A stretch of DNA of 64,000 nucleotides from Octopus sinensis (taxonomy: Eukaryota). Made by a program: the position numbers and the translations under genes. This document shows, in pieces, positions 7,189 through 49,820 of the stretch. The stretch lies in contig NC_043020.1 in NCBI RefSeq assembly GCF_006345805.1, positions 10,416,001-10,480,000 on the forward strand, given 5' to 3'. Within the stretch, counting starts at the first letter, position 1. Every line of letters begins with the position of its first letter. The notes beneath the pieces were generated by a model. It was not told where the DNA came from and did not search any database. It worked only from the letters and a program-made list of their open reading frames with translations.

Positions 7189-7562
7189 TTAAAGACTATT
7201 TAGGTATAAGCTAGAGATAGACAAGTAACTTGAGGGCATATTGGGCCTGACAAATTTCGCTTTGTTTATTTTCAAAAAGATTTCATCGTTAAATTTAAGT
7301 TTGTATTTAAACGATAATTGTACAATGGCATGTTCCGGTGTATTTAAAATGCTGGGTCTTTTCTTCATAAACACAGAATGTTTTCCATTATATTTTCTCT
7401 CCAACACCAAGGTATAAATTGCTGCAGTAGAATTTTTCGGAATGTGCAATTGCACTGTACACGATATTTCGTAAATCCCATCTTGAGGTATAAAAATGTA
7501 AGTTCCATCAACCAATTTAAAGTCGCCTTCTTCTTTCACCCACTGTAAATAAGAAGCTTCCT
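7189..7562 (-). CDS. TNF-like gene A, coding exon 4 (bulk of the TNF-homology-like domain)
   Basis: Acceptor tttttctttttcag|ag; EASYLQW...KLVDGTYIFIPQDGIYEISCTVQL...LKFNDEIFLKIN...SYLSISSL*. Carries the L-x-W, G-x-Y and L-x-x-x-D-x-I pattern of TNF-family ligands. The four exons total 657 nt = 218 aa + stop with no internal stop. Confidence 0.85.
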
Positions 7563-8789
7563 CTGAAAAAGAAAAATGAATAACAATCATAATGTTTTCT
7601 TTATTAACCACCAAAAGTTCACAAAAAAAGAAACATTGGTAATGGTACAAGACAGTGTAGGGTTACATAAAATGAAGCATGTACTGATGACAGCAAAAGG
7701 ATTTTATATGTCTAAGCTAGAAATTGATCTATAGTTAACTCTTTTTAAAAAAAATCTTCTTTGTTCATTTTTCTTGCTTTCAACCAGTGCTAATGGAGTA
7801 CATAATGTAGTTTTTAGAATCATTGGGTGTCTATTTCTATCATGTGGTGCTATTCATTAGTGCCTTTATTATAATTATAATTACATAATTATATACTTGA
7901 ATCAATTGTTACCGATATGGGTTTTATTACATGCTGTCTACTTGATAAAATCTTATGATTTCATCCTTAATTATAGATCAGTCATTTTAATGAATTTCAA
8001 TTACCTTTTTCTGATGATGTCTGGAAAGAAACAGCAATTTTATCAAAACATATTAAGCAACACTAATAATAAATAAAAAAAAAAACATGAAAATAAGTTT
8101 TTGATGGTTTTATAGATATTTCAAAATTATGATACTAGGTGTTTCCATTATTTTGTCCAACCGTTGTATATATATATGTGTGTGTGTGTGTATGTGCATG
8201 TATGTGTGTCTGTTTTCTGTGTGTACATGTGTGTGTATATATATATATATATACACACACACACATACACACATATGTATGACTGGTAGATGATTTTATT
8301 TGTGAAAATACAAAGGTCAGCTTGATTGTCTGAGTTGCTTTTTGGTTGTTCTATGCCAATGGAAATTTTTTGGGGTCTTTTGCAATTTTATTTAACGTTA
8401 TCTGATAATTAGCATATAAAATTATGTTTGACTCACGTACTAATTTTTATATTATATGATATTTTTTACTTTTGTTATGTTTATGAATTTGCTTTGCAAG
8501 ATTCTTGATGTGAAATCATGTGTTGAAACACATATTGATGTATTTATCCAAATTCACACTTTCTATTTTCTGTATAAGTTATTTAATTGTTTATATGACA
8601 TGGGTTATATATATACATATATATATATATATATTATATATATACATATATACATATATATATATATATATATATATATATATATATATATATATATATA
8701 TATATATATAAATACATATATATATATATATATATATATATATATATATATATATATTATATATATAAATACATATATATATATATATA

Positions 8790-11135
8790 CAACAATTGAG
8801 GGTAAAATTAATTAATTAATTATTAATCAATTTCACCAAGTGTTCAGTATGTAAAGGGACCATTTAAGGCGAATTCAAATTATTACATTATATAAAAGGG
8901 CTTAGTAAAATAAATTACTTTGCCACATACTGAACTCATTAGAAATAGCAGCTAAAAAAACTTTTTTAAAACTATTTCTAATACTTAAAGAAAATCTCTC
9001 TCATATAGTGCTTGCTCAATTCAACTCACGAAAGTATGGGGGTAAAGACATTAAAAAATCAGATGCAAAGGTTATTTGAGAACGTACGTTTCAAGATTAG
9101 TCAAACACGACATTTCTATCATCAGCTCAGAATTCCTTGGTTTGGATTTGAAAACACTGAAAGTGGGAGCATACCTTTTCGTCATCCCATCGCTTCCGAA
9201 GATCTGCTCGAAACTAACAGTGCCAGCATACCCAAAAATGCAAGCGAAGAATTTCTGCTCTCCCCTTTCCACCAGCGTGGGTTAAAATCAGCAAACGCTA
9301 AGCTTTTTCGGTAAATCCGAAACATTAAATATTAAATAGAGAGAGATGAATTATAATTTCAACAATTGAGGGTAAAATTAATTAATTAATTATTAATCAA
9401 TTTCACCAAGTGTTCAGTATGTAAAGGGACCATTTAAGGCGAATTCAAATTATTACATTATATAAAAGGGCTTAGTAAAATAAATTACTGCCACATACTG
9501 AACTCATTAGAAATAGCAGCTAAAAAAACTTTTTTAAAACTATTTCTAATACTTAAAGAAAATCTCTCTCATATAGTGCTTGCTCAATTCAACTCACGAA
9601 AGTATGGGGGTAAAGACATTAAAAAATCAGATGCAAAGGTTATTGAGAACGTACGTTTCAAGATTAGTCAAACACGACATTTCTATCATCAGCTCAGAAT
9701 TCCTTGGTTTGGATTTGAAAACACTGAAAGTGGGAGCATACCTTTTCGGCATCCTATCGCTTCCGAAGATCTGCTCGAAACTAACAGTGCCAGCATACCC
9801 AAAAAATGCAAGCGAAGAATTTCTGCTCTCCCCTTTCCACCAGCGTGGGTTAAAATCAGCAAACGCTAAGCTTTTTCGGTAAATCCGAAACATTAAATAT
9901 TAAATAGAGAGAGATGAATTATAATTTCAACAATTGAGGGTAAAATTAATTAATTAATTATCAATCAATTTCACCAAGTGTTCAGTATGTAAAGGGACCA
10001 TTTAAGGCGAATTCAAATTATTACATTATATAAAAGGGCTTAGTAAAATAAATTACTTTGCCACATACTGAACTCATTAGAAATAGCAGCTAAAAAAACT
10101 TTTTTAAAACTATTTCTAATACTTAAAGAAAATCTCTCTCATATAGTGCTTGCTCAATTCAACTCACGAAAGTATGGGGGTAAAGACATTAAAAAATCAG
10201 ATGCAAAGGGTATTGAGAACGTACGTTTCAAGATTAGTCAAACACGACATTTCTATCATCAGCTCAGAATTCTTGGTTTGGATTTGAAAACACTGAAAGT
10301 GGGAGCATACCTTTTCGTCATCCCATCGCTTCCGAAGATCTGCTCGAAACTAACAGTGCCAGCATCCCAAAAATGCAAGCGAAGAATTCTGCTCTCCCCT
10401 TTCCACCAGCGTGGGTTAAAATCAGCAAACGCTAAGCTTTTTCGGTAAATCCGAAACATTAAATATTAAATAGAGAGAGATGAATTATAATTTCAACAAT
10501 TGAGGGTAAAATTAATTAATTAATTATTAATCAATTTCACCAAGTGTTCAGTATGTAAAGGGACCATTTAAGGCGAATTCAATGTAATAATTTGAATTAG
10601 CCTTAAATGGTCCCTTTACATACTGAACACTTGGTGAAATTGATAATAATTAATTAATTAATTTTACCCTCAATTGTTGAAATTATAATTCATCTCTCTC
10701 TTTTATATTTATGTTTTCGGATTTACCGAAAAAGCTTAGCGTTTGCTGATTTTAACCCACGCTGGTGGAAAGGGGAGAGCAGAAATTCTTCGCTTGCATT
10801 TTTGGGTATGCTGGCACTGTTAGTTTCGAGCAGATCTTCGGAAGCGATGGGATGACGAAAAGGTATGCTCCCACTTTCAGTGTTTTCAAATCCAAACCAA
10901 GGAATTCTGAGCTGATGATAGAAATGTCGTGTTTGACTAATCTTGAAACGTACGTTCTCAAATAACCTTTGCATCTGATTTTTTAATGTCTTTACCCCCA
11001 TACTTTCGTGAGTTGAATTGAGCAAGCACTATATGAGAGAGATTTTCTTTAAGTATTAGAAATAGTTTTAAAAAAGTTTTTTTAGCTGCTATTTCTAATG
11101 AGTTCAGTATGTGGCAAAGTAAATAATTTTACTAA
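8790..11135. repeat. Tandem array of a ~568-bp unit (starts 8790, 9360, 9928, 10494) folding back into an inverted copy from ~10582
   Basis: Near-identical units beginning caacaattgagggtaaaatt; the reverse complement runs 10582-11135. Confidence 0.9.
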
Positions 11136-11973
11136 GCCCTTTTATATAATGTATATATATATACATATATAAATACATTATATATATATACACATATATA
11201 ATATACATATGTATATATATATAGTATATGTATATATATATATGTATTGTAATATAATATATATCTATATATATATATGTATATAATATATATATATGTA
11301 TATGTATATTGTATATGTATATATGTATAGTATATATATTATATATATATATATATATATATATATATATATATATATACATATATATTATATATATATA
11401 TATATATATATATACATATATATTTATTAATATATATATAATATATATATAGATATATATATATATATGTATGTAAATATATCTATCTATCTATCTATCT
11501 ATCTATATCTATTCTCTATATATATATATATATATATATATATATATATATATATATATATGTATGTAAATATATCTATCTATCTATCTATCTATCTATA
11601 TATATATATATATATTATATATATTATATTTATATTATATGTTATATAGGTATATATATATATATATATATATATATATATATGTATATATATAACTCAT
11701 GTCATATAAACAATTAAATAACTTATACAGAAAATAGAAAGTAAGAATTTGAATAAATACATCAATATGTGTTTCAACACATGATTTCACATCAAGAATC
11801 TTGCAAAGCAAATTCATAAACATAACAAAAGTAAAGCTACTTACCACACAGTCACTCCTACGTCTATAATGAAAGTATTTTAATTAATGCTATAACCATT
11901 GTTTAAATCTGTAACTGTAGTTATTTAAGGGGATAATTCAAATTATGAGAAAAATCTGTATAAATTTGTTTAC

Positions 11974-12021
11974 CCGACGGTGTGTAATGACTTGTTTTCA
12001 GGTGGAACATGGCATAGTAAG
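11974..12021 (-). CDS. TNF-like gene A, coding exon 3 (48 nt, (S)YYAMFHLKTSHYTPS), first strand of the TNF domain
   Basis: Acceptor ttttttttctcag| and donor g|gtaaac; phase 1 to 1. Same length as the paralogous exons in B and C. AMFHL resembles the TNF strand-A 'AHL' motif. Confidence 0.82.
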
Positions 12022-48940: not shown

Positions 48941-49335
48941 GGTGCAGGAGTGGCTGTGTGGTAAGTAGCTTGCTTACCAACCACATAGTTCAGGGTTCAG
49001 TCCCACTGCGTGGCACCTTAGGCAAGTGTCTTCTACTATAGCCTCGGGCCGACCAATGACTTGTGAATGGATTTGGTAGACGGAAACTGAAAGAAGCCTG
49101 TCATATATATGTGTGTTTGTATATATATATATATATATAAATGTATATGTGTGTGTGTGTGCTTGTCCTTCAACATCGCTTGACAACCGATGCTGGTGTA
49201 TTTACGTCCCTGTAACTTAGCGGTTCAGCAAAAGAGACTGATAGAATAAGTACTAGGCTTACAAAGAATAAGTCCTGGGGTTGATTTGCTCGACTAAAAG
49301 GCGGTGCTCCAGCATGGCTGCAGTCAAATAACTGA
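48941..49335 (+). mobile_element. SINE family 1 inserted just upstream of the conserved element in paralog C
   Basis: Splits aaatacccacat|...|aatgaaatgtctac, which are ~12 nt apart in gene A. Confidence 0.85.
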
Positions 49336-49342
49336 AATATAC

Positions 49343-49515
49343 AAATGAAATGTCTACAATAATTAACTGTACCATGGCTTTAGATGACACTTTGATAGGA
49401 TGAAGCCTCCTGTACATGTTTGCTAGAATTGTACTATCAGTCTGAGCAAGGCATCGCAGCTGTACAACTGACCGCATTAAAGCTCATGAAACTACAATGT
49501 GATGGGTGTAATATA
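49343..49515 (+). other. Highly conserved intron-2 element, copy in paralog C
   Basis: Inverted copy; a 61-nt core is identical in all three paralogs. Confidence 0.85.
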
Positions 49516-49772
49516 AGGATGCTTATATAGTCTTAGCTCTCTTTCATAAATGGTTAATAATTGTTCTAGATCATTTTCCTAATAATAATAATAATGATGA
49601 TTGTGAAATGGTTAATATATTTTACAGTTATTTATTAGATGATAATCTGAAATATTAAATATATGATATACACCAGGAGGTACTCTTTTCTTTGAATAGT
49701 CTTCTGTTGATATTGAACCTATATTAAAATATATCCTTCTCACTGTCTGCTTTCTCTCTTCTTATCTTTCAG

Positions 49773-49820
49773 TTCACCATTCCTTCTTTGACTTGATAAC
49801 AGAGAGTTACAAAGATTTGG
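49773..49820 (+). CDS. TNF-like paralog C, exon 3 homolog (48 nt, (F)HHSFFDLITESYKDL)
   Basis: Acceptor ctctcttcttatctttcag| and donor g|gtgagt; 48 nt, phase 1 to 1. Flanking intron sequence aligns with A and B. Confidence 0.7.

Follow-up and report, generated by a model that had tools for sequence, protein, structure and literature searches.

What do the split genes at this octopus locus encode, and how many of the copies are intact? The window, the whole stretch of 64,000 nucleotides of Octopus sinensis DNA analysed here (corresponding approximately to CM016882.1:10,416,001-10,480,000), contains two intact membrane-anchored TNF-family ligand genes, A and B, and a broken, inverted part of a third, C. 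A prior reading made from the sequence alone had guessed an octopus genome, and exact RefSeq protein matches place it in O. sinensis. Very probably, A and B are old paralogs that encode type II membrane ligands of a branch of the TNF ligand superfamily (TNFSF) that is confined to octopods, with the third copy a non-functional fragment.

Both intact genes lie on the minus strand in four coding exons. In gene A (LOC115223891), exon 1 (16980..17186, 207 nt, with the start ATG at 17186-17184 and the donor GT at 16979-16978) encodes a predicted 46-aa cytoplasmic tail and a single transmembrane segment (TM, aa 47-68). Two micro-exons follow: exon 2 (13015..13042, 28 nt), which encodes the stalk WNYHPNRPQ and is reused in RefSeq isoform X2 (P0001), and exon 3 (11974..12021, 48 nt; SYYAMFHLKTSHYTPS), to which the first beta-strand of the TNF homology domain (THD) is assigned from the model of the homologous segment of gene B. 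Exon 4 (7189..7562, 374 nt with the stop; 124 aa plus stop) supplies most of the THD and completes a spliced product of 218 aa. Gene B (LOC115224014) opens with a longer exon 1 (41462..41935, 474 nt), comprising a predicted cytoplasmic tail of ~134 aa, acidic, S/T/P-rich and of low complexity, and the TM; an alternative donor after 41486 yields isoform X2, in which the TM is 8 aa shorter. Its micro-exons are exon 2 (40255..40297, 43 nt; stalk VQDNPPPVKPSPLQ), found in P0005 and P0006, and exon 3 (38365..38412, 48 nt; FQHAFFHLKTRGYTEL), which encodes beta-strand A of the THD, the AlphaFold2 (AF2) model placing strand E3-8 there with a pLDDT of ~92. Exon 4 (34424..34812, 389 nt; 129 aa plus stop) again carries most of the THD, and the spliced product is 317 aa.

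These models leave little room for coincidence. Every intron of both genes is GT-AG, no stop interrupts either frame and the intron phases are 0/1/1, all as the sequence-only reading had described and as our splicing models reproduce; given that the copies have exon boundaries, phases and flanking intron sequence in common, the agreement is far beyond chance. The translations are also residue-exact matches to RefSeq XP_029650469.1 (LOC115223891 X1) for A and XP_029650665.1 (LOC115224014 X1) for B, bearing out the proposed lengths of 218 and 317 aa. The micro-exons are indeed missing from the list of open reading frames, as had been noted. The genes themselves had been called hidden, which they are not, since identical RefSeq models exist, with two isoforms per gene and the label "uncharacterized", and UniProt already marks O. 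bimaculoides paralogs as THD proteins.

Profile searches connect these proteins to TNF ligands. Against Pfam PF00229 (TNF; gathering score 23 bits), exon 4 of gene A scores 21.2 bits (E=3e-4) and gene B 12-15 bits (12.4-15.3), both under the gathering score, and the full-length gene A protein gives no Pfam match whatever. Two paralogs pass the threshold, P0002 (26.7 bits) and P0016 (27.6 bits), and their THDs share 41-57% identity with that of B. Membership of A and B therefore rests on transitivity through their paralogs together with predicted structure. PF00229 is the only relevant Pfam family matched by A, B and the paralogs, and a family profile searched against the PDB matched lymphotoxin-alpha (LT-alpha; E ~2-4e-4) and TRAIL only, across the whole domain. 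In that alignment the L-x-W, G-x-Y, 'ND.I' and terminal-strand columns line up. Only five columns, W, G, Y, I and I, are invariant across 17 relatives, and they align to 'LDW...GIY' of LT-alpha and to 'GFYYI...NDRIF...SFF' of TRAIL. The last strand, SYLSI, had been singled out as atypical. It does depart from the S-F-F of TRAIL, which is followed there by G, but, column by column, it aligns with the beginning of the TRAIL C-terminal strand ('SFF' of '...ASFF') and is a variant of the same strand, not a different one.

The predicted structure points the same way. An AF2 model of the gene B C-terminal domain, a single-chain prediction built from 17 more diverse relatives, has ten strands with a pLDDT of 85.6 and a pTM of 0.80; an earlier model from nine close paralogs was poor (pLDDT 63). 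When the PDB was searched with this model using Foldseek, the best 50 structures listed were all TNFSF ligands (TM 0.68-0.77, E ~1e-7), including RANKL, TNF, TL1A, TRAIL, LT-alpha, CD40L and FasL. The sequence-only reading had allowed that profile and structure searches might return no TNF jelly-roll; the matches that they return are TNF, and its assignment of A and B to the TNF superfamily stands on the profiles and on a TNF-type predicted fold.

In both proteins a single hydrophobic region (aa 47-68 in A, ~135-157 in B) lies upstream of the ligand domain and behind a hydrophilic N-terminus, and basic residues precede it (KRPTR in A, RPKK...K in B). The sequence thus predicts type II topology, with a cytoplasmic N-terminus, a single signal-anchor and an extracellular C-terminal THD. 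Instead of staying at the membrane, such ligands could act mainly as soluble cytokines, shed by metalloproteases or, in the case of the A isoform X2, freed by cleavage of the hydrophobic segment as a signal peptide. This X2 isoform opens at M47, directly at the hydrophobic segment, and has small residues at -3 and -1 of a putative cleavage site ('MILLSICLVALVVTMIVIAVS|MK'). Against release, the stalks are short (~11 aa in A, ~15 aa in B) and neither contains an R-x-[KR]-R furin-type motif. Shedding needs no furin site in many TNFSF members, however; metalloproteases release TNF-alpha, FasL and RANKL, which lack one, so the membrane retention that the sequence-only reading thought probable does not follow from the absence of that site. 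We regard mainly soluble action as unlikely, if a serious candidate.

The preferred reading of A and B as type II membrane ligands can be set out exon by exon. Exon 1 would provide the N-terminal cytoplasmic tail and one signal-anchor helix, the exon 2 micro-exon a short Pro-rich stalk, the exon 3 micro-exon strand A of the THD and exon 4 the other nine strands of the ten-strand jelly-roll. As in other TNFSF ligands, this domain would assemble on the cell surface as a homotrimer, or as a heterotrimer with paralogs, and the trimer would engage cysteine-rich TNFR-type receptors of neighbouring cells. The short stalk may hold the ligand at the membrane, or a sheddase may free it. Other molluscan TNFs suggest, by analogy, that the likely role is in immunity or cell death.

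The third copy had been described as an inverted paralog. Inverted it is, and two of its micro-exons are present, but it is a gene fragment with neither a TM exon nor a THD exon. A segment of 3.1 kb (47666..50778, plus strand) is 95-97% identical to O. vulgaris L005 42683-46514, in the orientation opposite to that of the colinear flanks, and is orthologous to intron 1, exon 2, intron 2, exon 3 and intron 3 of the intact O. vulgaris gene C, which is part of a same-strand tandem array. The exon-2 homolog (47707..47749, plus strand, 43 nt; ENSQQKSVTPAPPQ) and the exon-3 homolog (49773..49820, plus strand, 48 nt; FHHSFFDLITESYKDL) both retain AG/GT sites. The first (TM) exon and the TNF-domain exon are absent from the window by six-frame HMM search, by tblastn with the O. 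bimaculoides and O. vulgaris orthologs and by a hydropathy scan of the plus-strand frames from 42 to 47.7 kb.

Could this nevertheless be a complete, functional inverted gene, its end exons outside the window or missed? Both micro-exons have open frames as well as intact sites, and the window ends only 14 kb downstream of the second. Yet no TM exon was found between the start of gene B and exon 2, nor any THD exon on the plus strand; synteny confines the inversion to the 3.1-kb block, to the right of which the sequence is back in the opposite orientation; and the region of O. vulgaris C exon 4 is skipped in O. sinensis. A complete gene is therefore very unlikely, and the third copy, as assembled, is a non-functional fragment. 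It arose either by inversion and a loss of ~29 kb relative to O. vulgaris or through misassembly at repeats; the right breakpoint of the inverted segment lies at a copy of a SINE-like repeat (50370-50782), other copies of which are nearby.

For A and B, conservation argues that the open frames are maintained. Between O. sinensis and O. vulgaris their coding exons have hardly changed: one difference is seen in 1404 coding nt, whereas the colinear blocks in which these exons lie, with a substitution rate of 0.64%, would predict ~8.9 (P=0.0013). The ligand domains of A and B are 46% identical to each other. A paralog runs uninterrupted on a 1277-nt contig of run SRR16213285, which fits a spliced mRNA. 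O. vulgaris has six THD exons in 123 kb, all on the same strand, and for D, C and B tblastn maps the TM exon, the stalk micro-exon, the strand-A micro-exon and the THD exon. The O. vulgaris assembly has no first exon for gene A, which in this sister species may therefore be truncated or not required; in a blastn search with the exon-1 region of A, microsatellite matches predominated, and the junction sequences alone were informative.

That absence, the fast evolution and rearrangement of the family and the broken state of C would also suit a reading in which A, B or both are decaying or untranslated duplicates with incidental open frames. Set against it are the intact frames and canonical splice sites of both genes, the deficit of substitutions, the two RefSeq isoforms of each gene and the domain residues kept in an alignment of 17 relatives, and we consider decay highly improbable.

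Finally, that the C-terminal domains are C1q-type, or of another jelly-roll family, is scarcely credible and already largely refuted, for while C1q and TNF have a fold in common and the Pfam TNF scores of A and B are under threshold, PF00386 (C1q) has no match even at E<=10 in the Pfam search, the PDB profile matches and all of the best 50 structures listed are TNFSF with no C1q structure among them, and the full-length (X1) proteins have a type II TM architecture with neither a signal peptide nor collagen-like Gly-X-Y repeats. A C1q-domain identity for A and B, supported by neither profile nor fold, was rejected. The comparison of PF00229 with PF00386 that had been suggested from the sequence thus came out for TNF, below threshold for A and B and above it for the paralogs.

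How do A and B, as diverged TNF ligands, compare with known members of the superfamily? They resemble vertebrate TNFSF ligands (TNF-alpha, LT-alpha, TRAIL, RANKL, TL1A, CD40L and FasL) in type II architecture, in the predicted ten-strand jelly-roll THD, which superposes on theirs at TM-scores of 0.70-0.77, and in the alignment of the L-x-W, G-x-Y and 'ND.I.L' columns and the C-terminal hydrophobic strand. They differ in that identity is only 10-19%, the stalks are very short, the first strand has its own 48-nt exon and each THD has one Cys and so no intradomain disulfide. Invertebrate TNFs (Drosophila Eiger and those of abalone, oyster and scallop) are likewise type II ligands with a THD, and in molluscs they have undergone lineage-specific expansions (10.1101/2024.07.27.603686), but the octopod clade is strongly diverged from them.

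The closest relatives are octopod THD paralogs of the same family, at 41-58% THD identity for octopus members: LOC106873363, LOC106880432 and LOC106878338 in O. bimaculoides (in UniProt, 'THD / TNF family profile domain-containing protein'), LOC115223917, LOC115224028, LOC115226699 and LOC115224005 in O. sinensis/vulgaris, and proteins of Argonauta hians. Relative to these, A and B have lower Pfam TNF scores and no domain annotation, and the cytoplasmic tail of B is unusually long. An HMM search at E<=1e-3 returned 21 relatives among 1.84 billion representatives; every source-named match is octopod, several have no traced species, and the same search gave no named bivalve, gastropod or insect protein. 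The expansion had been proposed to be lineage-specific, and this distribution agrees.

No new kind of system is involved: TNFSF expansions in molluscs, an octopus-specific clade among them, have been described before, and the gene models exist already. An octopus-specific TNFSF expansion was reported in a 2026 preprint, and a literature search on cephalopod TNF homology domains found nothing more specific than that preprint. Six TNFSF paralogs of O. vulgaris group together as a monophyletic clade, and the species has eight Eiger-type ligands and four Wengen-type receptors (10.1101/2024.07.27.603686). What is gained is annotation, in that LOC115223891 and LOC115224014 can be named TNF-superfamily ligands with good confidence, and a map of the local array that shows how O. 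sinensis and O. vulgaris differ there. Because cephalopod cytokine biology is poorly known, a defined ligand set helps immune and neuro-immune studies.

A bolder and rather improbable extension is that the octopod THD clade is a neofunctionalised branch, so far diverged that TNF profiles scarcely recognise it, in which the X2 isoforms might tune juxtacrine versus soluble signalling, A through its alternative first exon and B through the donor within its TM. The fast turnover of the array, which shows an inversion, the ~29 kb loss and the loss of exon 1 between sister species, would fit an arms-race-type immune locus.

As for the rest of the window, no TNFR-type receptor gene lies within it, and tRNA and Rfam scans gave no matches. 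Intron 3 of gene A carries a repeat of ~567 bp, which TRF missed because it was run with a maximum period of 500.

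Genes A (LOC115223891) and B (LOC115224014) are each split into four exons on the minus strand. In gene A, the exon 1 coding sequence (17186–16980) is followed by exon 2 (13042–13015, 28 nt), exon 3 (12021–11974, 48 nt) and the exon 4 coding sequence (7562–7189), which together encode 218 aa; the corresponding segments of gene B are 41935–41462, 40297–40255 (43 nt), 38412–38365 (48 nt) and 34812–34424, encoding 317 aa. We read each proposed junction and, for exon 2 of B, enumerated every AG...GT candidate. All introns of both genes are GT-AG, in phases 0/1/1, with polypyrimidine tracts visible 5′ of the acceptors, and both reading frames run free of internal stops. 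Exact look-ups show the translations to be identical to XP_029650469.1 (LOC115223891 isoform X1) and XP_029650665.1 (LOC115224014 isoform X1), confirming the two gene models of the sequence-only reading. For the same reason the genes are not hidden, as that reading had described them: both are already annotated in RefSeq, named "uncharacterized". RefSeq also lists X2 isoforms, starting at Met47 in A and, in B, using an exon 1 donor 24 nt upstream at the cost of 8 residues of the transmembrane helix. The suspected octopus origin is borne out by a profile of the two long C-terminal ORFs, which matched an Octopus sinensis RefSeq protein at 100%. An exact-sequence look-up maps gene B to chromosome record CM016882.1 (assembly GCA_006345805.1), and its locus coordinates place the window at about CM016882.1:10,416,001–10,480,000, in the orientation of that record.

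Several lines of evidence support reading A and B as TNF ligands. First, PF00229 (TNF) is the only relevant Pfam family, although the last exon of A (21.2 bits) and B (12–15 bits) score under the 23-bit threshold and full-length A has no Pfam match. Two paralogs do pass it, P0002 at 26.7 bits and P0016 at 27.6 bits, and O. bimaculoides members are already labelled "THD" (TNF homology domain) or "TNF family profile" domain proteins in UniProt.

Second, when run against all sequences in the PDB, the family profiles match only lymphotoxin-alpha (E ~2–4e-4) and TRAIL. The TRAIL alignment covers the whole domain, its "NDRIF" and "ASFF" columns pairing with octopus "ND.I.L" and "SSYL".

Third, 9 sequences at first gave only a weak AlphaFold model (pLDDT 63), but even its best 50 structure matches were all TNF ligands. 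A second model of the B domain, using more diverse relatives from an exhaustive HMM search, has ten strands (pLDDT 85.6, pTM 0.80); every one of its best 50 PDB matches is a TNFSF ligand (RANKL, TNF, TL1A, TRAIL, LT-alpha, CD40L or FasL) at TM 0.68–0.77, with no C1q structure among them. Profile and structure searches, whose failure to find TNF would have counted against the original proposal, thus both return this family.

In both A and B, a single hydrophobic region separates the ligand domain from a hydrophilic N-terminal tail. The stalk comes from the 28/43-nt exon, and the 48-nt exon codes for the first strand of the domain. The stalks are short and lack R-x-[KR]-R, in line with the sequence-only reading that they have no furin site. 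Because metalloprotease shedding requires no furin-type motif, this absence does not establish membrane retention. The sole such motif in either protein, RWKR at B residues 195–198 (~34746–34757, minus strand), lies outside the stalk, within the THD core at the conserved L-x-W position.

The exhaustive HMM search found 21 relatives among 1.84 billion representatives at E<=1e-3, and every source-named one is from Octopus or Argonauta, which supports an octopod-specific family and the lineage-specific expansion suggested earlier. A 2026 bioRxiv preprint (10.1101/2024.07.27.603686) recovered six O. vulgaris TNFSF paralogs as a monophyletic group with 100% support, read by its authors as a lineage-specific expansion, and counted 8 Eiger-type ligands and 4 Wengen-type receptors in that species. 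Given that work and the existing RefSeq models, A and B are two further members of a known family; what we add is the domain assignment for their loci and a map of the rearranged array. At the 0.64% rate seen in the colinear blocks containing these exons, the 1404 shared coding nt would hold ~8.9 substitutions between O. sinensis and O. vulgaris; they hold 1 (P=0.0013), a deficit that indicates purifying selection. A 1277-nt contig from run SRR16213285 encodes a paralog without interruption, consistent with a spliced mRNA from this family.

The O. vulgaris array comprises six TNF-domain exons (D, C, E, B, A and F), all on the same strand within ~123 kb; three more lie ~450–650 kb away on the same chromosome. 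Comparison with two loci on OX597837.1 shows window positions 1–47665 to be colinear, at 98–99% identity in large blocks outside the microsatellite-rich 17.6–25 kb. The 1.4 kb at 16197–17573, including gene A exon 1, is missing from the O. vulgaris assembly, where 41 bp link (AT)n to a CT-rich microsatellite; the first exon of A is therefore absent there.

Colinearity ends at 47665/47666. Positions 47666–50778 (3.1 kb) are an inverted match to the middle of the intact O. vulgaris gene C (intron 1, exon 2, exon 3 and intron 3), beyond which the original orientation resumes within gene C intron 1. Relative to O. vulgaris, ~29 kb is missing, holding the last exon of gene C and the TNF-domain exon of paralog E (3834–4205 of locus L004). 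This inversion and loss explain the state of the third copy. Homologs of exon 2 (47707–47749, 43 nt) and exon 3 (49773–49820, 48 nt) on the plus strand keep their splice sites intact and are flanked by conserved intron sequence, but a whole-window six-frame HMM search, ortholog tblastn and a hydropathy scan found no transmembrane or TNF-domain exon for it. The sequence-only reading, correct for A and B, was overstated here in counting a third paralog. At the right breakpoint (~50778) lies one copy (50370–50782) of a SINE-like repeat of ~400 bp, with further copies close by, and there are no N gaps. The rearrangement may be either a genuine repeat-mediated event or a misassembly; under either cause, the third copy is a fragment in this assembly.

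Automated models in sister species fuse tandem neighbours, at L005/L004 (O. vulgaris OX597837.1, 30.36–30.50 Mb) and in P0011 (O. bimaculoides), reflecting either read-through transcription or prediction artefact. P0022 joins D and C micro-exons, P0011 carries two THDs in frame, and the O. vulgaris annotation P0006 (281 aa) is a chimeric B-to-A model reading the A exons out of frame.

The SINE-like repeat occurs in many copies on both strands at 82–94% identity (for example 3613–4035, 12473–12855, 18581–19016, 21243–21670, 48295–48706, 48945–49337 and 50370–50782); ARAGORN found no tRNA-like head in it, and the spurious ORFs over it share the motif PRSGTEPGTMWLVSKLLTTQPLL. A near-perfect palindrome at 16689–16928 (117-nt arms, 96% complementary, 6-nt loop), 52 nt downstream of the gene A exon 1 donor, looks MITE-like. 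Gene A intron 3 holds three ~567-bp tandem units, each with a ~100-aa ORF (9012–10448, plus strand), and one inverted copy (10723–11025, minus strand), flanked by long (TA/TATG)n-type microsatellites. Degraded non-LTR retrotransposon copies lie at 2965–5460 (plus strand), with a weak zf-RVT match at 5041–5460, and at 54.9–56.9 kb and 60.2–63.5 kb (minus strand), where the ORF at 60199–61125 scores 85 bits against RVT_1 and the two copies are ~90% alike.
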